From Lytechinus pictus (taxonomy: Eukaryota), in contig NC_087245.1 of the NCBI RefSeq assembly GCF_037042905.1, positions 4,092,001-4,156,000 of the forward strand: a stretch of DNA of 64,000 bases, written 5' to 3'. A model generated the notes under the pieces. That model searched no databases. It had not been told where the DNA came from and saw nothing but the letters and a program-made list of their open reading frames with translations. Positions 3,470 to 57,129 of the stretch are shown in pieces (position 1 is the stretch's first letter; every line of letters starts with the position of its first letter). The translations under genes and the position numbers were made by a program.

Positions 3470-4309
3470 ATGGCAAGACGAGGAGAAGAGGAAAATATTG
3501 AAATGGGGGTCATTGGAAACACATCTACTTCTGATGAAGGATTGGGCTGCTGTGGAATCATTCTTGCAATTGTGTCGATAATACTCGTGATTTGCACGCT
3601 ACCCCTTTCACTTTTTGTCTGCATAGTAGTGGTTCAGGAGTATGAGAGAGCAGTTATCTTTAGACTTGGACGTCTCTTGTCTGGTGGTGCTAAAGGTCCA
3701 GGTCTCTTCTTCATCCTACCTTGCATCGATGATTACAAAAAGGTAGATCTTCGCACCATTTCATTTGATATTCCTCCTCAAGAGATTCTGACCAGGGATA
3801 GTTTGACCATCTCTGTGGATGCTGTGGTCTTCTACCGTGTCAAGAATGCTACCATCAGCATCGCCAATGTGGAAAACGCAGACAAGTCCACCAGACTTCT
3901 GGCTCAGACGACACTTCGTAATGTCCTGGGCACCAAGAACCTAGCTGAGATTCTTGCAGAACGTGAAGGCATCAGTCACTACATGCAGTCCACCCTCGAC
4001 AATGACACCGACCCTTGGGGTATCTTAGTAGAGCGAGTTGAGATCAAAGATGTTCGTTTACCAGTCCAGCTCCAGAGAGCCATGGCTGCTGAAGCTGAAG
4101 CTTCCAGAGAGGCTAGGGCTAAGGTGATTGCTGCTGAAGGAGAACAGAATGCTGCTCGTGCTTTGAAGGAAGCTGCAGATACTATGGCTGAATCTCCATC
4201 GGCTCTTCAACTGAGGTACCTACAGACCCTTAACACCATCTCAGCCGAGAAGAACTCCACTATCATCTTTCCACTACCCATCGATCTCCTCAAAGGTATC
4301 CTAAAGTAA
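3470..4309 (+). CDS. Stomatin/band-7 (SPFH) family protein, paralog 1, single-exon CDS, 279 aa
   Basis: Cys motif (GCCG) and a hydrophobic hairpin with the conserved Pro (TLPLS), followed by VVQEYERAVIFRLGR, GPGLFFILPC, RLLAQTTLRNVLG and LQRAMAAEAEASREARAKVIAAEGE...LQLRYLQTL...IIFPLPID. Collinear with human stomatin and C. elegans MEC-2 as recalled. Confidence 0.96.
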   Translation: MARRGEEENIEMGVIGNTSTSDEGLGCCGIILAIVSIILVICTLPLSLFVCIVVVQEYERAVIFRLGRLLSGGAKGPGLFFILPCIDDYKKVDLRTISFDIPPQEILTRDSLTISVDAVVFYRVKNATISIANVENADKSTRLLAQTTLRNVLGTKNLAEILAEREGISHYMQSTLDNDTDPWGILVERVEIKDVRLPVQLQRAMAAEAEASREARAKVIAAEGEQNAARALKEAADTMAESPSALQLRYLQTLNTISAEKNSTIIFPLPIDLLKGILK

Positions 4310-6064: not shown

Positions 6065-6194
6065 NNNNNNNNNNNNNNNNNNNNNNNNNNNNNNNNNNNN
6101 NNNNNNNNNNNNNNNNNNNNNNNNNNNNNNNNNNNNNNNNNNNNNNNNNNNNNNNNNNNNNNNNNNNNNNNNNNNNNNNNNNNNNNNNNNNNNN
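6065..6194. other. Assembly gap
   Basis: Run of N. Confidence 0.99.
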
Positions 6195-38734: not shown

Positions 38735-40221
38735 CGTCACAGTCTCCTGGTTGGTTAAAAATGGAGGCACCAGCCTTTCTGCTATCTACAGGGAGAGGAA
38801 ATGTGTAGGCCTAATTAATGCACGACACGAGACGTAGCTATAGGTTATCTACTCTCTGAGTTAAATACACCTTGGACTTCATACGATAAACTGGTGATAA
38901 CAAACAGTTTAACTAGTATAATACACACCAAATGCCAACCATTTGAATTCCTTGTGCATTTGCGTCAACTTAATATTTATTCTGCTGAAATCCGCAGAGA
39001 GAGAGAGAGAGAAATGTGTGCCTGTAGTCGTGCTGGATACATACACGTGACTGAGAGTTCCGTCACGAGTGAATCCTGTTCGAGAGGAAAGATTAAGAAC
39101 ATTTGAATAAATTATGGCATGTTGCCAATAGTAACCCACACTGTTAAACGATTGTCGTGCGATCAACACCGAGGTCGAGGTCATGTACCATAGCCACCTC
39201 GCGTCAAGGGTATAATTGTCTGTGGGTTGGGGGGGGGGGGGGGCCGCGGGGACGGACAGCCCCATTCATCATGAGCGGTGCAAGTTTGCACCTGTCCATT
39301 GGGAGGGTGGTCAACTAGCCCTTGATTTGTATCTAACATAACAGTAAATACAATAAAAAAAATATATATTTGTTACCCCCTCCGCTATCAAAATACCGCG
39401 AAGCCGCTCCTGAATAGACCGACCTGTACTACTTACATTATCTTTAATTCAGTCTTTTAACCCACCAGCATTTTACAATTATGATTATCTGGAAGGCACA
39501 TATTGCAAAACACTATGGCATATGTTGATGGGATAATCCAATTTGAAAAAGATGGAAATTATGTTAGCGAAACTGAGGAGAAAGTAAGAATTTATAAAAC
39601 AAAACGAAACAAAACAGAATATTTATATGGTTTAAAAAATTAAGGAAGTACACTTTATTTTCATTGTACAAAACCAGGAACGATTCAAAATCTACCTTGA
39701 TACTCGATTTCGACACTTTATTATTTGAAAAAATATGACAAATAGTTTACTTTAAAACAAATTTTTTGTTCACATTCATCATGAGTAGCATAAATATAAA
39801 TTTCCCTATCATCAATCAAATCATCAATAAAAAAACACAGATTGAAAAAATTACAGACTTTTCCCCAATTTCTACACACGTAAGCCAACTATTTCGTTCA
39901 GCTGGAATTAACAAAAAACAGCATAATACATCTTTTAAAAAAATTAATTAACAACTTCATGAGATGATTACAAAAAATATATTAATCTCCGAATTCTATT
40001 ACAAATGGTTTTGTTGAAAATGACTTAATGAAAGACGTCATAACATTTATACTTATAATATCATTTTTCGAATAAAGTAAGCTTGTTATGTTAATGAATG
40101 GGGTTAATTGAGTTGATCAGCGATCAGTTCAATAGTGGGCACCTGTCATATCATTATATTTATGTCTTCAGAATTCAAATGTAAATTAAATAAACATTAT
40201 TTGTATCTTTGCTTTAGGCAA

Positions 40222-43010: not shown

Positions 43011-43919
43011 ATGAGCAACAATCGTGTGAATCCTGACAATTCGAGTCAAATTGAACTGATGGCGCAGAAACAGAGAAGCAACGATGGGCAGTGGCAAGCC
43101 CAACATGATGAACAAGGCATTATTGGAGCAAATACCGCAGACCATAGCATTGGTTGCTGCGGGGTGTTCCTCATGCTTATTTCGGTGTTACTAGTGATCT
43201 GCACGCTCCCATTTTCATTATTTATCTGCATAAAGGTGGTTCAGGAGTATGAAAGAGCAGTTATCTTTAGACTTGGGCGTCTCTTGTCTGGTGGTGCTAA
43301 AGGACCGGGTCTCTTCTTCATCCTACCTTGCATCGAGGATTACAGAAAGGTAGATCTTCGTACCATTTCGTTTGATATTCCTCCTCAAGAGATTCTGACC
43401 AGGGATAGCTTAACCATCTCTGTGGATGCTGTGGTCTTCTACCGTGTCAAGAATGCCACCGTCAGCATCGCCAATGTTGAAGACGCAGGCAGATCAACCA
43501 GACTTCTGGCTCAGACGACACTTCGTAATGTCCTCGGCACCAAGAATCTGTCGGAGGTCCTGGCAGAACGTGAAGGTATCAGTCACTACATGCAGTCCAC
43601 CCTCGACCATGACACCGACCCTTGGGGTATCCAAGTAGAGCGAGTTGAGATCAAGGATGTTCGTTTACCTGTCCAGCTCCAGAGAGCCATGGCTGCTGAA
43701 GCTGAAGCTTCCAGAGAGGCTAGGGCTAAGGTGATTGCTGCTGAAGGAGAGCAGAATGCTGCTCGTGCTTTGAAGGAAGCTGCAGATACTATTGCCGAAT
43801 CTCCATCGGCTCTTCAGCTGAGGTACCTCCAGACCCTCAACACCATTGCAGCAGAAAAGAATTCCACTATTATCTTTCCACTTCCTATTGATCTTATCAA
43901 TGGTGTTATGAAAAAGTAA
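43011..43919 (+). CDS. Stomatin/band-7 family protein, paralog 5, single-exon CDS, 302 aa with a longer N-terminus
   Basis: Intact ORF with SPFH motifs, divergently oriented to paralog 4. A second in-frame Met (MAQKQ) could be the true start. Confidence 0.95.
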   Translation: MSNNRVNPDNSSQIELMAQKQRSNDGQWQAQHDEQGIIGANTADHSIGCCGVFLMLISVLLVICTLPFSLFICIKVVQEYERAVIFRLGRLLSGGAKGPGLFFILPCIEDYRKVDLRTISFDIPPQEILTRDSLTISVDAVVFYRVKNATVSIANVEDAGRSTRLLAQTTLRNVLGTKNLSEVLAEREGISHYMQSTLDHDTDPWGIQVERVEIKDVRLPVQLQRAMAAEAEASREARAKVIAAEGEQNAARALKEAADTIAESPSALQLRYLQTLNTIAAEKNSTIIFPLPIDLINGVMKK

Positions 43920-47773: not shown

Positions 47774-50176
47774 CGTGGTTTAAATAACGGGAGGACTGTG
47801 CATGCCATTCAATGTTTCCGTCGTTTACAATGAAATCGCGCCCTCATACAAAACTCTCTCTGCCGCGAACTATTCATAATTATTTTGTTGCTTTGATTAT
47901 TAATGAATAAAATAATACCCAAATTATGTTTTATGTGTTCCTCCATATTTGATTCCTAGGATGTTCCATTTAATTATTATTTCTTTGCCTATAGTGACTC
48001 ACTTTTTTGTTCGTGATTTTATGGATGTTTGTTCATTCTTATAATATAACACTAAAAATTAGAGGAATTACATCCATCCATGTATTACATCGTGTTTACA
48101 TCAGAAAAGCATTTCCCCATGTCACCCTCGCATCCAATGACACAAAATGGAAGAATTTACGTACATATGTATATATATATTCAGCATGAATATAGTTTCT
48201 ATCATTTTGAGCAGAATGCTTAATTAAAAATGTCCTTGGCTTTATTGTCATCGTGGTATTGCGTTGTTTACGCAGGAACAACAGGAAATTGCAACTGCGA
48301 TACTATCTGGTGCATAGGGAAAGACCCATTTTAAATTATCTAATTAATATGGAAGAATTCTGAAGACATTCCATGATTGTCATTTGAGAGTGACCATGAC
48401 GTCATGAATCTAATGAAAATGCTTAGATCAGTCTCTTTTAATGCACGGCCCAAGTACTGCTTTCTTTATGGCTAAACCCAATGTTGAAATTTGTAGAGTA
48501 AAGGACTTTCATAATTATTTGGATATTCTTTTCCATTTAGTCGCTGTTTGTTCGTATGGTCAAGAGCAAGAAGGAGCCGAAAAAGTGATCACGATATAAT
48601 TTCCTGAAGGAACATTATAATATAAATGAAGAGGATATAGAATAATTGAAAATCAATAACGATGTCTGCATCGATTCTGGTTGTTTTGACCGTTTTATCG
48701 ATATTCGCCATTGGAGAGGGAAGTAAGTTTATCAAAATTATTTGACCAAGCAGCTGGAGATTGGTGTGTTATATCAGCTTGTACCCCACGCTCCCCCCCC
48801 CAAAAAAAAAAATGTTCTAACTATTGGATAAGGGAGCGTAGCGACCAACCGAAACGAATCATCTATTCGAACTGCTTGGAAAACAATTCAGGACTTGACC
48901 TACATGAACCATGCACGGGGCATGTGATTTCACCCTCCGATATAGGAGTGACAAGACTGCCAGTCAGGAAGCGGACCTGTGTTGTTAATCTCTCCATGCG
49001 TTTCCGAGTGAGCAATGCGAACGATCGAGATTTTTTTTACTTTTAAGAGCGAGTTTTTCACAGTTTGGAGATCTCTGAAATTAAAGTATAAAGGGTATTA
49101 TAACATGGATTGATGGTTTAAACGTCAATGGTGACCGAAGAGAAAAGTGATATTTGCATTTACAGAACTTTATTATTAACTTCCAAATAAATGAAGGCCT
49201 AAAGCATTTTTTCTGAATGGAATAGTACTCATCATGGTAGATAACAAAAGAACATAACCCCGGGATCGCTACCCTTCAGAGCATATTTTAGAGTCAAATC
49301 ACTAAATATTTTTAATAACCTATATTCTCGGTCAGGGGGAATATAGCGACGGAGCCATTAGAATAACAAGATTTCAGAGTGCTTTTGACAAAACAGACAA
49401 ATCGAGGGTGAACCGGAATTAGTATTTTTAAATTCGTGGTGGGAGAATGATTTGAAGAAAAAAGTTGTTTGCCAACCCTGAATCATATTCAGCATTGTGT
49501 TTGCTCGATAGTTTATATTGCAGGGAATCATTGACTTGCTGTACTCGAACTTTCAATCGTGTTAATAGAGCATTAACGTATTTTGAATCTAGATTTGCGA
49601 GAGAGCGTGAGGTGACCGGACGACAAAATTTTCGAATTTGAATATAGTAGAAGTCGTCATTTTAGATCCCATAACGACATGAATGGATATCGTATCATTC
49701 AATACACATTGTGAAAAATATTGTGTAAAATTTTAACCAGCACGAGGGTAATTATGTGTCCAACAAATGTTGGGCAGTATTTTACCCAATGCGGGAAGCA
49801 TATTGTCTAGTAATGTTAAATATATAAGCGGCAATTACTTTGGAATGGGCAAAATTTTCACCACGATGGATAAATAAAAATGCCCAATGTTGGTTGGAAA
49901 CATAATTACCATGATTACCCTCATGGAGCAGTTTTACCCAATATTTTTTTACCCGATATTTTTTTCGAAATGACGTTTTATTATTTATTATGATCTATGT
50001 TTTTGAGCCTAATGCGTCTCCATTACAATACGCCTAGTTACACAAGGCAATTGTTCATGGAAACGCGGTACTTTTGTCATTTACTTGATAAAGACGGTAT
50101 GTACTCGTCGAAAATTTGTAGACTTCAATAAATTTTGTTGGATTAAAGCATGAAAGTTTCAACCTTGGTTTTTTTT

Positions 50177-50214
<38 letters not shown>

Positions 50215-50738
50215 AGCCATATACATATAAGCCGCGTCTACCATTGTTCTCTTCATCCATTTCTTTCACAATATATATATATATGCAACCACTTTGTCTT
50301 AATTCTGTTTGGTCTCATCCCAAATGATCTAATGCTAGTTCATCTCCATTTGAACCCCCCTTTTTGTTTTTAGCCCATTTACCACTTTTTTCTAAATTCC
50401 AGGTGGGCGAAATACCCCTTTGTCTGATGACACATTAGTCTAAAGAACAATTTCATGTGAAAACATTACAATGATAATAGGAAGACGAAGTGTACATTAT
50501 ACCAAGTGAGAATTCGACCAAGTAGTGATGACTGGACCAAGTGGTAATTAGACCAAATTGACAGAAGATCAAATGCGTTTAACCTTGATATTTAGACAAT
50601 AGATGCTAGTGGAGGTGGGTTTTTTTCAGTCCAATCAATTTTGGGAAAGGGGTGTATATTGCCCGTTTGGAAGCCTCTGATCGGGATTTCAATACACTTC
50701 GCATAATTTATTGTTTTACATAATCATTTTGTTCACAG

Positions 50739-50983
50739 CTTGTCCTGTTGACATGGATTTGGTTCTAAACTCGTGTTACTCATGGCATCATTCTCCTCTT
50801 AGTGCAGTAGAGGCAGAGGGATACTGCCCTAAACAGACAGGACCAAGAACCCTAGCAATGTTTGCCTCCCAGCAAGAAGTCAGTCAGGTGTATACCTACT
50901 TTTACAATAAGTCTGGAATCCAAGCTGGACAGACGATCGAAGTGGCCATTTGGGTTGCCAATGCGTCTATAGGAATGCCGTCT
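50739..50983 (+). CDS. Exon A of the lectin-mucin-PAN gene: N-terminal part of a C-type lectin-like domain
   Basis: Acceptor ttttgttcacAG ends at 50738 and donor GTAAGT starts at 50984 (phase 0). Translation CPVDMDLVLNSCY...EAEGYC...LAMFASQQE...IWVA fits the CTLD pattern CP-x-SCY / EA-xx-C / LA-x-S-xx-E / WIG. Confidence 0.8.
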
Positions 50984-51585
50984 GTAAGTATGACACCCCC
51001 CTCGCCACCCGATTTCCCCTTTGCTTTCATAAGACTTCAAAATTCTTATTCCGGGGGGGGGGGGGCACTGGCATTAAAAAGTGGATACCATGCTCGTACC
51101 CGAAAGCAACTATAAATGGTTGATTTTCATGCATGGTCGGACAATGTCTAAGCACATGGATAAAAGAGTATCAAACTTACCGAATTAAACAAAAAATGTA
51201 TGCATTAAAAACATGAAAATGCAAGTTTAGGTTACTCTGAGATCAAATCATGATAGGTTAATAGCTTATGAAATTACTTTTGAAATTCTAATAAGGAACA
51301 TGGTGCCCACTTTGTAATGAATTGCATTGGAAAAAAAGGAACGAGCGAGCAACGCGAGCGAGTCCTAAGATAAATCTGAATTTCATGATTCTGTAAGATT
51401 TATGCAAACCGATAAAAATCAATCAGAATATGATGAAAAGTAAGATGTTGAAACGTAAAATACATAGATGTACAAATGACAACTTAGTGAAGTAAATGGG
51501 GGGGGGGGGGGGATACCACCACAAAGTAAAGGGCCTACGCCGATGTATTGAAAACCACCTGCTATTTTTCTTTCGTTTTATCCAG

Positions 51586-51679
51586 CTTGGTCTTGGTTGT
51601 ACCATCTTTGCCACAGGAGGCGTTCTGTCGGATGAGCCATGTAACATACCACACGGTGTCCTTTGTGAAATAGAACTCG
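51586..51679 (+). CDS. Exon B of the lectin-mucin-PAN gene: C-terminal part of the CTLD
   Basis: Polypyrimidine acceptor tttttctttcgttttatccAG (phase 0) and donor G|GTGAG at 51680 (phase 1). Translation LGLGCTIFATGGVLSDEPCNIPHGVLCEIEL fits the CTLD ending C...D-x-x-C...(I/L)CE. Confidence 0.82.
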
Positions 51680-52026
51680 GTGAGATTTGCTTACATTGTT
51701 CGTAGATTAAACTTGCTTCTTCCTTTTCTTCATTTTATGTGAATGCAGACAGAAGTAAGAAAGTATGAATAACTGCTGAACGGGATTAAGTGACAGACAG
51801 GCCGATCGATGAATTTTAGCTAGCGAGCAAAATCGATTCGCCAGGGATAAGTAGGTTAAAAAAAAAATTAAAATGCATTCTTCATTTCTTTGAAAAAAGT
51901 CATGTGACAAAATGACACATCTTTGTGATTTCTTTAAAATAACTAGTATCGCATGGGGCAACAGATCAGATACTTGCACAATGAGCTAATAATATTCATA
52001 TCAATTTCAATATCAATCCTAATGCA

Positions 52027-55000
52027 GATTCACCTTCAACAGAGCTCGCTACAACTGATCGAACGACTGATTCACCTTCAACAGAGCTCGCTACAACTGA
52101 TCTAACGACAGATTCACCTTCGACAGAGCTCGCTACAACTGATCAAACGACAGACTCACCTTCAACAGAGCTCGCTACAACTGATCTAACGACTGATTCA
52201 CCTTCGACAGAGCTCGATACAACTGATTTAACGACAGATTCACCTTCAACAGAGTTCGCTACTACTGATCTAACGACTGATTCACCTTCGACAGAGCTCG
52301 ATACAACTGATTTAACGACAGATTCACCTTCAACAGAGTTCGCTACTACTGATCTAACGACAGATTCACCTTCAACAGAGCTTGCTACAACCGATCTAAC
52401 GACAGACTCACCTTCAGCAGAGCTCGCTACAGTTACTGATTTAACGACAGACTCACCTTCAACAGAGCTCTCTTCAACTGATCTAACGACATATTTACCT
52501 TCAACAGAGCTCGCTACAACTGATCTAACGACAGATTCACCTTCAACAGAGCTCGCTAAAACTGATCTAATGACAGATTCACCTTCAACAGGTCTCGATA
52601 CAACTGATCAAACTACAGATTCACCTTCAACAGAGCTCGCTACAACTGATTTAACGACAGATTCACCTTCAACAGAGTTCGCTACAACTGATCAAACGAC
52701 AGACTCACCTTCAACAGAGCTCGATACAACTGATCAAACTACAGATTCACCTTCAACAGAGCTCGCTACAACTGATTTAACGACAGATTCACCTTCAACA
52801 GAGTTCGCTACAACTGATCAAACGACAGACTCACCTTCAACAGAGCTCGCTACAACTGATCTAACGACAGATTCACCTTCAACAGAGCTTGCTACAACTG
52901 ATCTTATGACAGATTCACCTTCGACAGAACTCGGTACAACTGATCTAACGACTGATTCACCTTCGACAGAGCTTGATACAACTGATTTAACGACAGATTC
53001 ACCTTCAACAGAGCTTGCTACAACTGATCTTATGACAGATTCACCTTCGACAGAGCTCGCTACAACTGATCTAACGACTGATTCACCTTCGACAGAGCTC
53101 GATACAACTGATTTAACGACAGATTCACCTTCAACAGAGTTCGCTACAACTGATCAAACGACAGACTCACCTTCAACAGAGCTCGCTACAACTGATCTAA
53201 CGACAGATTCACCTTCAACAGAGCTTGCTACAACTGATCTTATGACAGATTCACCTTCAACAGAGTTCGTTACAACTGATCTAACGACAGATTCACCTTC
53301 AACAGAGTTCGTTACAACTGATCAAACGACAGATTTACCTTCAACAGAGCTCGCTACAACTGATCAAACGACAGACTCACCTTCAACAGAGCTCGCTACA
53401 ACTGATCTAACGACAGATTCACCTTCAACAGAGCTTGCTACAACTGATCTTATGACAGATTCACCTTCGACAGAACTCGGTACAACTGATCTAACGACTG
53501 ATTCACCTTCAACAGAACTCGGTACAACTGATCTAACGACTGATTCACCTTCAACAGAGCTCGCTACAACTGATCTTATGACAGATTCACCTTCGACAGA
53601 ACTCGGTACAACTGATCTAACGACTGATTCACCTTCAACAGAACTCGGTACAACTGATCAAACGACAGACTCACCTTCAACAGAGCTCGCTACAACTGAT
53701 CTAACGACTGATTCACCTTCAACAGAGCTTGCTACAACTGATCTTATGACAGATTCACCTTCGACAGAACTCGGTACAACTGATCTAACGACTGATTCAC
53801 CTTCAACAGAACTCGGTACAACTGATCTAACGACTGATTCACCTTCGACAGAGCTTGATACAACTGATTTAACGACAGATTCACCTTCAACAGAGTTCGC
53901 TACTACTGATCAAACGACAGACTCACCTTCAACAGAGCTCGCTACAACTGATCTAACGACAGATTCACCTTCAACAGAGCTTGCTACAACTGATCTTATG
54001 ACAGATTCACCTTCAACAGAGTTCGTTACAACTGATCTAACGACAGATTCACCTTCAACAGAGTTCGTTACAACTGATCAAACGACAGATTTACCTTCAA
54101 CAGAGCTCGCTACAACTGATCTAACGACAGATTCACCTTCAACAGAGCTCGCTACAACTGATCAAACGACAGACTCACCTTCAACAGAGCTCGCTACAAC
54201 TGATCTAACGACTGATTCACCTTCAACAGAGCTTGCTACAACTGATCTTATGACAGATTCACCTTCAACAGTGTTCGCTACAACTGATCTAACGACAGAT
54301 TCACCTTCGACAGAGCTCGTTACAACTGATTTAACGACAGATTCACCTTCAACAGAGTTCGCTACAACTGATCTAACGACTGATTCACCTTCAACAGAGC
54401 TTGCTACAACTGATCTTATGACAGATTCACCTTCGACAGAACTCGGTACAACTGATCTAACGACTGATTCACCTTCAACAGAACTCGGTACAACTGATCT
54501 AACGACTGATTCACCTTCGACAGAGCTTGATACAACTGATTTAACGACAGATTCACCTTCAACAGAGTTCGCTACTACTGATCAAACGACAGACTCACCT
54601 TCAACAGAGCTCGCTACAACTGATCTAACGACAGATTCACCTTCAACAGAGCTTGCTACAACTGATCTTATGACAGATTCACCTTCAACAGAGTTCGTTA
54701 CAACTGATCTAACGACAGATTCACCTTCAACAGAGTTCGTTACAACTGATCAAACGACAGATTTACCTTCAACAGAGCTCGCTACAACTGATCTAACGAC
54801 AGATTCACCTTCAACAGAGCTCGCTACAACTGATCAAACGACAGATTCACCTTCGACAGAGCCCTCTACAACCGATCTAACGACTGATTCACCTTCAACA
54901 GAGCTCGCTTCACCTGGCCTAATGACAGATTCACCTTCAACAGAGCTCGCTACAACTTATCTATTGACAGATTCACCTTCAACAGAGCTCACTACAACTG

Positions 55001-55845
55001 ATCTAACGACAGATTCACCTTCGACAGTGCTCGCTACAACCGATCTAACGACACAATCACCTTCAACAGTGCTCGCTACATCTGATCTAATGACACAATC
55101 ACCTTCAACAGAGCTTGCTACAATTACTGATCTAACGACACATTCACCTTCATCAGAGCTCGCTACAACTGATCTAACGACTGATTTACTTTCAGCAGAG
55201 CTCGCTACAACTGATCTAACGACAGATTCACCTTCAACAGTGTTCGCTACAACTGATCTAACGACAGATTCACCTTCGACAGAGCTCGTTACAACTGATT
55301 TAACGACAGATTCACCTTCAACAGAGTTCGCTACAACTGATCTAACGACTGATTCACCTTCAACAGAGCTCGCTTCACCTGGCCTAATGACAGATTCACC
55401 TTCAACAGAGCTCGCTACAACTTATCTATTGACAGATTCACCTTCAACAGAGCTCGCTACAACTGACCTAATGACAGATTCACCTTCAACAGAGCTCGCT
55501 ACAACTGATCTAATGACAGATTCACCTTCAACAGAGCTCGCTACAACTGATCTAATGACAGATTCACCTTCAACAGAGCTCGCTACAACTGACCTAATGA
55601 CAGATTCACCTTCAACAGAGCTCGCTACAACTGATCGAACGACTGATTCACCTTCAACAGAGCTCGCTACAACTGATCTAACGACAGATTCACCTTCGAC
55701 AGAGCTCGTTACAACTTATCAAACGACTGATTCACCTTCAACAGGGTTCGATACAACTGATCAAACGACATTTTTAAATTCAACAGAGCCTGCTACAACT
55801 GATCTAACGACAGATTTACCTTCAACAGAGCTCGATATAACTGAT
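52027..55845 (+). repeat. Coding minisatellite, 42-bp unit (DSPSTELATTDLTT), about 90 copies
   Basis: Unit gattcaccttcaacagagctcgctacaactgatctaacgaca. The frame is preserved throughout; the only indels noticed are 3-bp insertions. Confidence 0.98.
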
Positions 55846-56349
55846 GTGCAATCGTCTGCAGAAAGCACTTCATCTACTCCAGATGTTTCAACATCCCTTA
55901 CAACTATCAATTTTCCAACAACCTATGGAACGACTGCTCTAACGTCAGAATCATCTGCAACTGAATTACGCACTTCACATACACAAAACCTAGGGACGAC
56001 TAAAGTCACATCACCGACTGAAATCACAGCAGTTGGTCCGGTCACAACTATGACAACAGAAAACAACACCCAAAGCGGCATGGTCCCTACTTTCAAATCA
56101 ATAGCTCATGAAACAGGAAAGTCATTTGTGTTACTTCATGTTAATTATTCTGTTTCATCAGTCGATGTACTTTCTACTCATGAAATGATTCAGACACGAA
56201 TCCGATGTGCATCAAAGTGCAGTGGATTATCCGAGTGTTATGCTTTCACCTACTCCCACATAACTCAAGAATGTTTGGTCGGAAGAAACGTTAGTTATCA
56301 GAGCCTGCATGGAACCAGTGGTATTACGTATAGAAAAATAGACCTGTAG
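52028..56349 (+). CDS. Terminal exon: acidic Thr/Ser-rich mucin-like repeat plus C-terminal PAN/apple-like domain
   Basis: Acceptor aatgcAG ends at 52027, and G+AT rebuilds the first Asp of DSPST. The exon is in frame with track ORF 52570..56349. The C-terminus CASKCSGLSECYAFTYSHITQECLVG has the PAN-like C-x3-C-x5-C-x-AF-x-Y...C spacing. Confidence 0.88.
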
Positions 56350-56360
56350 TATGATAAAAA

Positions 56361-56370
56361 AATAAATAAA
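56361..56370 (+). promoter_or_regulatory. Candidate polyadenylation signal (overlapping AATAAA) for the lectin-mucin-PAN gene
   Basis: aataaataaa just after the TAG stop. The motif is common in AT-rich DNA. Confidence 0.4.
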
Positions 56371-57129
56371 AAACGTAACGAAGTGCAGTATATTAAAATA
56401 TTTGGAAAATTGCCGATTTAATGTTTTATATTGACAGTATGAGATTGATGAGAAACGGAATCGTTGTAGGTAAGGTACATGGTGTATGACGGGATATGTC
56501 GTTAAAATTCAGAATGGTTAGCATGGAAAAAAAAAGATTCAGATGATTTTCTTTTTGTTTATAGTCTTTTTAATGATATTCATACCAATTTCCATATTTT
56601 AAAAACAGGTTTCGGAGATAATGTAGGTTTCCGACATTGTAATTACCTGAAAACATCTGTGAGCAAAATTCTACCAAAACATCTGTCCCTACTGAACAAC
56701 TTAGCATATCTGAAGCCCTTAGGATATATCCAATCTATAATATAGGTATCTTTAATTGAATCATGACATTATAGATGACTTACATGTGACACTGATCAAT
56801 AGGGATTCTCAATCACTATGAAAACAAAGCTGAAATAAGCAGGTGTATATTAGTTCAAATTAATTTTATCATAATACTGTCGTATTTTTTTTTAAGTGTA
56901 AAGAAAAAAAGCTTGGCTCCTTCTTTTGCACTTATCAATGCAAATTATTTACAAAACATTTAAATGCCCTTTAAGAACAACTCGATAAAAAGCATCTTGG
57001 CGATATCAGTTCAGTTCAATATATTTATTTTTCTTAGCATGAAATGACGGAATAACTTTTAGAAAAAAGGGGGGAAATACTTATATTATGATACTGATAA
57101 TGGTTCCTAGTGAAATTTGGCTCTATACA

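Follow-up and report, generated by a model that had tools for sequence, protein, structure and literature searches.

What gene lies behind the long acidic repeat at a locus of the sea urchin Lytechinus pictus, and what might its product do? The locus belongs to a 64,000-nucleotide stretch of contig NC_087245.1 (assembly GCF_037042905.1, positions 4,092,001 to 4,156,000 of the forward strand), hereafter called the window; positions below count from its first letter. The original prediction, made from the letters alone, placed here a hidden spliced gene joining a short-loop C-type lectin domain, an acidic Thr/Ser-rich stalk, and a PAN/apple domain. We find that the window gene belongs to an echinoid family of lectin-mucin-PAN proteins that is annotated but has not been studied, and that it is a new and giant member of it. 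That the gene and its lectin-mucin-PAN architecture are real we hold with high confidence.

Exons, splice sites, and the Lytechinus variegatus ortholog

The gene model and the parts of its product are as follows.

48662-48722, plus strand: exon 1; ATG and a 20-residue signal peptide (MSASILVVLTVLSIFAIGEG); leaves in phase 1, followed by the donor gtaagt
50739-50983, plus strand: exon 2 (lectin exon a); N-terminal two-thirds of the C-type lectin-like domain; enters in phase 1, leaves in phase 0
51586-51679, plus strand: exon 3 (lectin exon b); C-terminal third of the lectin-like domain; 94 nucleotides (nt); enters in phase 0, leaves in phase 1
52028-56349, plus strand: exon 4; repeat array, linker, and PAN domain; stop codon at 56347-56349
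52028-55845, plus strand: first part of exon 4; acidic Thr/Ser-rich mucin-type stalk of ~91 tandem 14-residue units, ~1,275 amino acids (aa), from Tandem Repeats Finder and translation
55846-56124, plus strand: exon 4; nonrepetitive Ser/Thr-rich linker, from translation
56125-56349, plus strand: C-terminal PAN domain with four Cys, then the stop, from Pfam PAN_1 and a profile
56361-56366, plus strand: candidate polyadenylation signal AATAAA, 12 nt 3' of the stop, from a pattern match

Exons 2 to 4 join at canonical GT-AG sites in phases 0 and then 1, as predicted, and the same intron positions and phases recur in three paralogs and in the L. variegatus ortholog. Exon 2 lies between the acceptor cacag/CTTGTC at 50739 and the donor CCGTCT/gtaagt after 50983 (phase 0), and exon 3 between the acceptor atccag/CTTGGT at 51586 and the donor AACTCG/gtgaga after 51679 (phase 1); exon 4 opens after atgcag/ATTCAC at 52028. 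Spliced together, exons 2 to 4 form an uninterrupted frame of 1,552 codons, in line with the length of at least about 1550 aa that had been claimed. The ORF (open reading frame) listed for this region opens at ATG 52570; thus, it leaves out both lectin exons and the opening 180 codons of the repeat, again as the prediction had it.

Since lectin exon a opens in phase 1, a first exon was sought upstream. The segment 48662-48722 is the sole good candidate for a signal-peptide exon in the 10.7 kb upstream; the pattern has five matches on both strands of the whole 64-kb window, of which this one is the most hydrophobic. The same upstream search on paralog A predicted the first exon of that gene, and the L. 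pictus RefSeq protein XP_054771007.1 agrees with it residue for residue. With exon 1 added, the full four-exon gene (48662-56349, plus strand) encodes a product of 1,573 aa with a pI of about 4. Apart from the signal peptide, the product has no markedly hydrophobic 19-residue window, and its C terminus is polar, which bears out the claim that no transmembrane or glycosylphosphatidylinositol-type tail is present. On the basis of the signal peptide and the lack of any other hydrophobic segment, the product is predicted to be secreted without a membrane anchor; what had been proposed as secretion is now grounded in an exon. A TATA-like string (tataatataaat) matches at 48617-48628, 34 to 45 nt 5' of the exon 1 ATG, a position that suggests a very short 5' untranslated region.

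The corresponding locus of L. variegatus (GCA_018143015.1, CM031015.1) was reached through orthologs of a stomatin gene array that accompanies the gene in the window and is syntenic there. That locus ends inside the repeat, and the comparison covers the signal peptide, the lectin-like exons, and the start of the repeat. All four exons are present, with the acceptors of exons 2 to 4 and the donors of exons 1 to 3 conserved. Exon identity is 93 to 95% (93% for exon 1, 95% for exon 3), against 80 to 86% in the flanking noncoding DNA. Over the signal peptide and lectin domain, 118 of 133 residues are identical and all Cys are kept; the ratio of nonsynonymous to synonymous differences (pN/pS, Nei-Gojobori) is about 0.45. 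The array opens with the same 14-residue unit as that of the window gene. One of the L. variegatus copies carries a gene call that starts at exactly the orthologous ATG; the predicted product has 1,273 residues, and no Pfam match is recorded for it. Since the ortholog is already a called gene, only an ORF track of the prokaryotic style hides the window gene; the original description of it as a hidden gene stands to that extent.

The stomatin and lectin-mucin locus occurs twice on L. variegatus CM031015.1, at 91.23 Mb and 92.02 Mb, ~0.8 Mb apart and with near-identical exons; only one of the two copies carries a gene call. This could reflect a recent segmental duplication or an uncollapsed haplotype.

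The lectin-like and PAN ends

The N-terminal domain spans 112 aa. Exon 2 encodes its first three Cys, both helices, and the WVA strand, and exon 3 encodes three Cys, an LSD in the place of WND, and the closing ...LCE strand. The six Cys lie at the sites expected of a C-type lectin-like domain (CTLD), namely, C1-C4, C2-C3, and the long-form N-terminal pair C0-C0'; together with the W of ...IWVA..., they are invariant among family members. The loop between WVA and the next Cys is only 12 residues long (10 to 12 among family members), whereas its mode in the other CTLDs retrieved is 35 to 39 residues. EPN and QPD are absent, and LSD aligns to the WND of mannose-binding protein. The short-loop domain devoid of Ca2+/sugar motifs that had been described is therefore what we find.

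Profile and structure searches both place this domain among CTLDs. The PDB chains matched by a profile of exon a (window gene and three paralogs) were all CTLDs, with matches that open at the first residue of the domain; the best was CLEC10A (5e-5), followed by ASGPR2, snaclecs, and others. With exon b, 14 of 15 matches were the last strands of collectin-type CTLDs, and with the whole domain all 11 matches were CTLDs. The spliced N terminus of the window gene scores 91 bits against a family hidden Markov model built without it, end to end and with no gap at either junction. An AlphaFold2 (AF2) model of the family domain, with XP_054771007.1 as first sequence, has the CTLD order of strands and helices (predicted local distance difference test [pLDDT] score, 74; predicted template modeling [pTM] score, 0.68). 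In Foldseek, its top 50 matches are all CTLDs (probability 1.0, TM scores of 0.61 to 0.72). In VIA-align, 57 chains reach a Z score of 8 or more, and the top 50 are again all CTLDs (Z of 9 to 12.3), led by LLT1 (Z of 12.3, root mean square deviation of 1.9, 93 residues aligned). Kinship with the compact CTLDs of Link modules or intimin was also considered and is ruled out, since all sequence and structure matches are canonical animal CTLDs.

The best structural matches are CTLDs of the natural killer (NK) receptor type or others that do not bind sugar (LLT1/CLEC2D, CD69, CLEC9A, snaclecs), which have the same fold and disulfide framework and likewise no Ca2+/sugar motif. Yet these domains, most of them in membrane receptors or venom dimers, have a loop of the usual length, while the window domain has a loop of 12 residues and heads a secreted mucin. 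The N-terminal domain is a CTLD by fold and does not qualify as a Ca2+-dependent sugar-binding domain. The loop-less CTLD is the most unusual feature of the gene.

At the other end, Pfam PAN_1 scores 26.1 bits on the window tail against a gathering cutoff of 21.4, and only PAN families match in the last 199 aa. XP_030837267.1, XP_054771007.1, and the database relative P0020 also exceed the PAN_1 threshold, and the paralogs score 23.6 to 28.9 bits. The family PAN profile matched only PAN/apple chains in the PDB: Toxoplasma MIC4 (9e-9), PAN modules of fungal oxidases, factor XI, HGF, and plasminogen. The PAN domain is kept in all paralogs, and its four Cys are invariant; a fifth Cys in the PAN region of the paralogs is missing from the window gene. 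The apple subtype has six Cys, with a third disulfide between the first and the last; this outer disulfide is absent here, and all family members lack a Cys ahead of the RC...KC pair. Profile searches of the PDB thus returned both CTLD and PAN matches, and structure comparison returned CTLD matches.

The repeat stalk and the echinoid family

Between the two ends lies the acidic Thr/Ser-rich stalk that had been claimed. Tandem Repeats Finder reports a single array at 52025-55845 with a 42-nt unit, 90.8 copies, 89% matches, and no indels scored. Segmentation of the translation gives 90 units, of which 88 have 14 aa and the other 2 have 15 aa, with the consensus DSPSTELATTDLTT. The stalk is 47% Ser plus Thr, 21% Asp plus Glu, 7% Pro, and 0.2% Lys plus Arg, and thus has the long Ser/Thr/Pro-rich tandem repeats that define mucin-type regions. 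By analogy with such regions, we infer that it would be densely O-glycosylated. The reading frame is kept over 1,439 codons with no stops, both length variants are whole codons, and 5 of the 126 single-base changes of the unit could create a stop. Synonymous differences among repeat units are enriched (101 of 222 observed versus 37 of 126 expected).

In regard to known classes, the signal peptide, lectin-like domain, repeats, linker, and PAN domain account for the whole product, which leaves no vWD/C8/TIL or cystine-knot modules of the gel-forming mucins. Nor does it have the transmembrane segment of a membrane-tethered mucin or of a group XIV CTLD receptor (CD93, thrombomodulin, endosialin). 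The window product is a secreted mucin-domain glycoprotein that bears a binding module at each end; it is neither a classical C-type lectin nor a strict apple protein.

The relatives of the gene define a small echinoid-specific family with a short-loop CTLD, a mucin region, and a PAN domain. Genome searches with lectin exon a and with the tail reached the same three places, at 8.02 to 8.055 Mb on the minus strand of contig G000:C16, a chromosome other than that of the window; in each, a lectin exon lies 2 to 5 kb upstream of a PAN-type tail. These three paralogs share the intron positions and phases of the window gene. In all four genes, lectin exon a opens in phase 1, two bases ahead of the first Cys codon, and closes in phase 0 after ...LPS, and lectin exon b is exactly 94 nt, opening four codons before a Cys and closing in phase 1, with the next exon in phase 1. 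Over lectin exon a, the window gene is only 32 to 42% identical to the paralogs, yet it keeps every family-invariant residue. Like the window gene, the paralogs have a signal-peptide exon, two lectin exons, and a phase-1 mucin/PAN exon that together encode a six-Cys short-loop lectin-like domain, a Ser/Thr-rich middle, and a C-terminal PAN domain. The tree of the lectin domains has no supported branch and gives no date for the split between the window gene and its paralogs.

An exhaustive profile search with exon a retrieved four full-length relatives, all colinear with the spliced family proteins across both junctions. One (P0003) is XP_054771007.1, the L. pictus "uncharacterized protein LOC129278903," which shares 92% identity with paralog A. 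Two (P0001 and P0006) are XP_030837267.1 and XP_030837268.1 of Strongylocentrotus purpuratus, named "cell wall protein DAN4-like" in the database and "C-type lectin domain-containing protein" in UniRef. The fourth, P0020, is akin to paralog C. Databases therefore carry the family only as "uncharacterized" or "DAN4-like," and literature searches by accession, for DAN4-like proteins in urchins, and for lectin, PAN, and mucin in sea urchins found no work on it. The statement that the architecture matches no named protein holds as far as the literature goes; still, shorter members exist as RefSeq models, and the L. variegatus ortholog is a called gene. As a side observation, XP_030837268.1 (AAGJ06000012.1) has a non-PAN tail and a gene range that does not translate to the query protein, and the neighboring XP_030837267.1 is partial, with two tandem lectin-like domains; these S. 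purpuratus models may be misjoined.

What sets the window gene apart is the build of its middle region. The paralogs encode 288 to 586 aa, with nonrepetitive or cassette-exon mucin regions and comparable unique S/T-rich stretches ahead of the last domain, whereas the window gene has a single 3.8-kb array of ~91 units. Its 14-aa unit has no other occurrence in the genome of the window and was otherwise seen only at the syntenic locus of L. variegatus. The mucin region of paralog B (G000:C16:8033608-8040490, minus strand) consists of four near-identical 186-nt exons, phase 1/phase 1 and spaced by ~350 nt, in contrast to the single-exon 42-nt array of the window gene. These cassette exons could be alternatively spliced or variable in copy number; since they carry TTDLPSTES-like motifs, the middle regions of the family may be related.

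Proposed role and alternative explanations

The best explanation of these results as a whole is probably a four-exon gene for a secreted lectin-mucin-PAN glycoprotein that acts as an extracellular tether, spacer, or cross-linker. If O-glycosylated, the stalk would be a stiff, hydrated, strongly negative rod. An extended mucin stalk measures ~0.25 nm per residue as a rule of thumb, at which value this one would reach ~300 nm. The lectin-like end may bind a protein or a noncanonical ligand without Ca2+-dependent sugar binding, as NK-type CTLDs do, and the PAN end may bind a protein or glycan partner. Mucus, the glycocalyx, and apical matrix are examples of the extracellular layers in which the whole molecule would then serve as a noncovalent tether, spacer, or cross-linker. 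Among possible functions, a tether or coat, as against an adhesive, biomineral, or other role, is a tentative choice made by analogy. A more specific version is conceivable, although we consider it unlikely: the family would consist of undescribed extracellular tethers whose loop-less CTLD and PAN domain recognize two different matrix or microbial ligands; the window member would have become a ~300-nm rod by runaway expansion of its acidic 14-residue unit within Lytechinus; and the repeat number would set how thick or how charged a surface coat is, for example, a barrier of the gut, the larva, or the egg coat.

Two known proteins illustrate such a build. Lubricin/PRG4 places a long O-glycosylated tandem-repeat stalk between small globular binding domains and has no vWD/CK polymerization modules. 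It shares the logic of a stalk with end modules, by analogy only, and differs in its somatomedin B and hemopexin ends, its basic rather than acidic repeat, and its being a vertebrate protein. Caenorhabditis elegans LET-653, which combines PAN-Apple domains, a Pro/Ser/Thr-rich O-glycosylated region, and a ZP domain, is likewise secreted with no transmembrane or glycosylphosphatidylinositol anchor, and its PAN domains anchor the protein to a luminal matrix (PMC4970718). Unlike the window gene, it has two N-terminal PAN domains, a functional ZP domain, no lectin-like domain, and a short, nonessential mucin region (PMC4970718); the two have no sequence kinship beyond the PAN fold.

Several results weigh against the reading of the locus as a gene for a lectin-mucin-PAN tether. 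None of the four family proteins that were scanned (XP_054771007.1, XP_030837267.1, XP_030837268.1, and P0020) had a Pfam Lectin_C (PF00059) match at an E value of ≤1, a shortfall we attribute to the loop cut to 12 residues, the loss of EPN/QPD, and the LSD in place of WND; the two window lectin exons, scanned separately, likewise had no Pfam match at an E value of ≤10. The fold of the window lectin domain is drawn from a model of the ortholog of a 42%-identical paralog. For the PAN tail, AF2 gave a model of too low a quality to be of use (pLDDT of 51). The pN/pS of 0.45 amounts to only moderate constraint, and the repeat statistics are soft, since the units share ancestry and their variants are not independent events. 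Searches of the protein database with the PAN tail (protein lengths of 791 to 2518 aa) and with lectin exon a (74 to 234 aa) gave no match, and the whole last exon gave only compositional matches, to salmon "mucin-5AC-like" proteins, with no protein carrying this repeat. Finally, a search for public sequencing runs containing 50739-56800 listed none, which is not proof that none exist.

Among functional alternatives, it is rather improbable that the product belongs to a tube-foot or other temporary adhesive, in which the mucin stalk would make the secretion cohesive and the two end domains would attach to glycans in the footprint, cuticle, or biofilm. The two-ended architecture suits cross-linking, and mucin-like and lectin-like proteins are among the proposed echinoderm adhesive candidates (PMC7037938). 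However, that source has no mention of PAN or apple domains, and the product has none of the vWD, C8, or EGF modules listed there for nonpermanent adhesives (Table 1, PMC7037938). The sugar-binding loop is moreover missing from the lectin-like domain.

A matrix protein of spicule, test, spine, or tooth appears highly improbable. Here the polyanionic stalk would bind Ca2+ or calcite, with a lectin-like domain as in proteins of the SM50/SM30 type. Like those, the window product is a secreted echinoid protein joining a lectin-like domain to repetitive sequence, in this case a long acidic one (21% D plus E, pI of about 4), and its structural neighbors include the eggshell matrix CTLDs struthiocalcin and ovocleidin-17. 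Yet the latter make up only two of 50 CTLD matches that are all equally good. The stalk is Thr/Ser/Pro-rich and mucin-like, whereas spicule matrix repeats are rich in Pro, Gly, Asn, and Gln, and those of the SM50 type, rich in Pro, Gly, and Asn, are not mucin-like; further, we know of no PAN domain in SM50-type spicule matrix proteins. In none of the searches did SM50/SM30 proteins stand out as close relatives: the five strongest named family-like matches are not SM proteins, and the PDB holds none. The analogy with SM50 that accompanied the original prediction is therefore weak, with no search or test in favor of kinship.

That the locus is a decaying or nonexpressed copy, open only through recent in-frame repeat expansion, is very hard to credit: the search for sequencing runs listed none, the databases searched yielded no protein that is identical or nearly so, and the repeat units are young (89% alike), but the splice sites, six plus four Cys, signal peptide, and frame are all intact in the window gene, the retrieved parts of both L. 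variegatus copies are intact in splice sites, six lectin Cys, signal peptide, and frame (pN/pS of 0.45), all family-invariant residues persist at 32 to 42% identity to the paralogs in the first lectin exon, and the L. variegatus locus has a called gene.

The finding bears on no long-standing open question. Its value lies in completing a gene model that an ORF scan cannot see, in defining the echinoid family, and in the loop-less CTLD, a compact natural example of the fold that may help the study of non-sugar binding by CTLDs. It also offers a practical explanation of how so large a secreted protein could escape notice in mucus, adhesive, and skeletal proteomes: since the repeat has 0.2% Lys/Arg and is probably heavily glycosylated, trypsin-based proteomes would detect the protein only via its two small end domains.

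As for the rest of the window, N runs occupy 6065-6194 (130 bases) and 25585-26379 (795 bases). It also contains five intronless stomatin (Band_7/SPFH) genes of 279 to 302 aa, with near-identical cores and different N termini.

3470-4309, plus strand: stomatin gene
21163-22017, minus strand: stomatin gene
27490-28341, minus strand: stomatin gene
37877-38770, minus strand: stomatin gene
43011-43919, plus strand: stomatin gene

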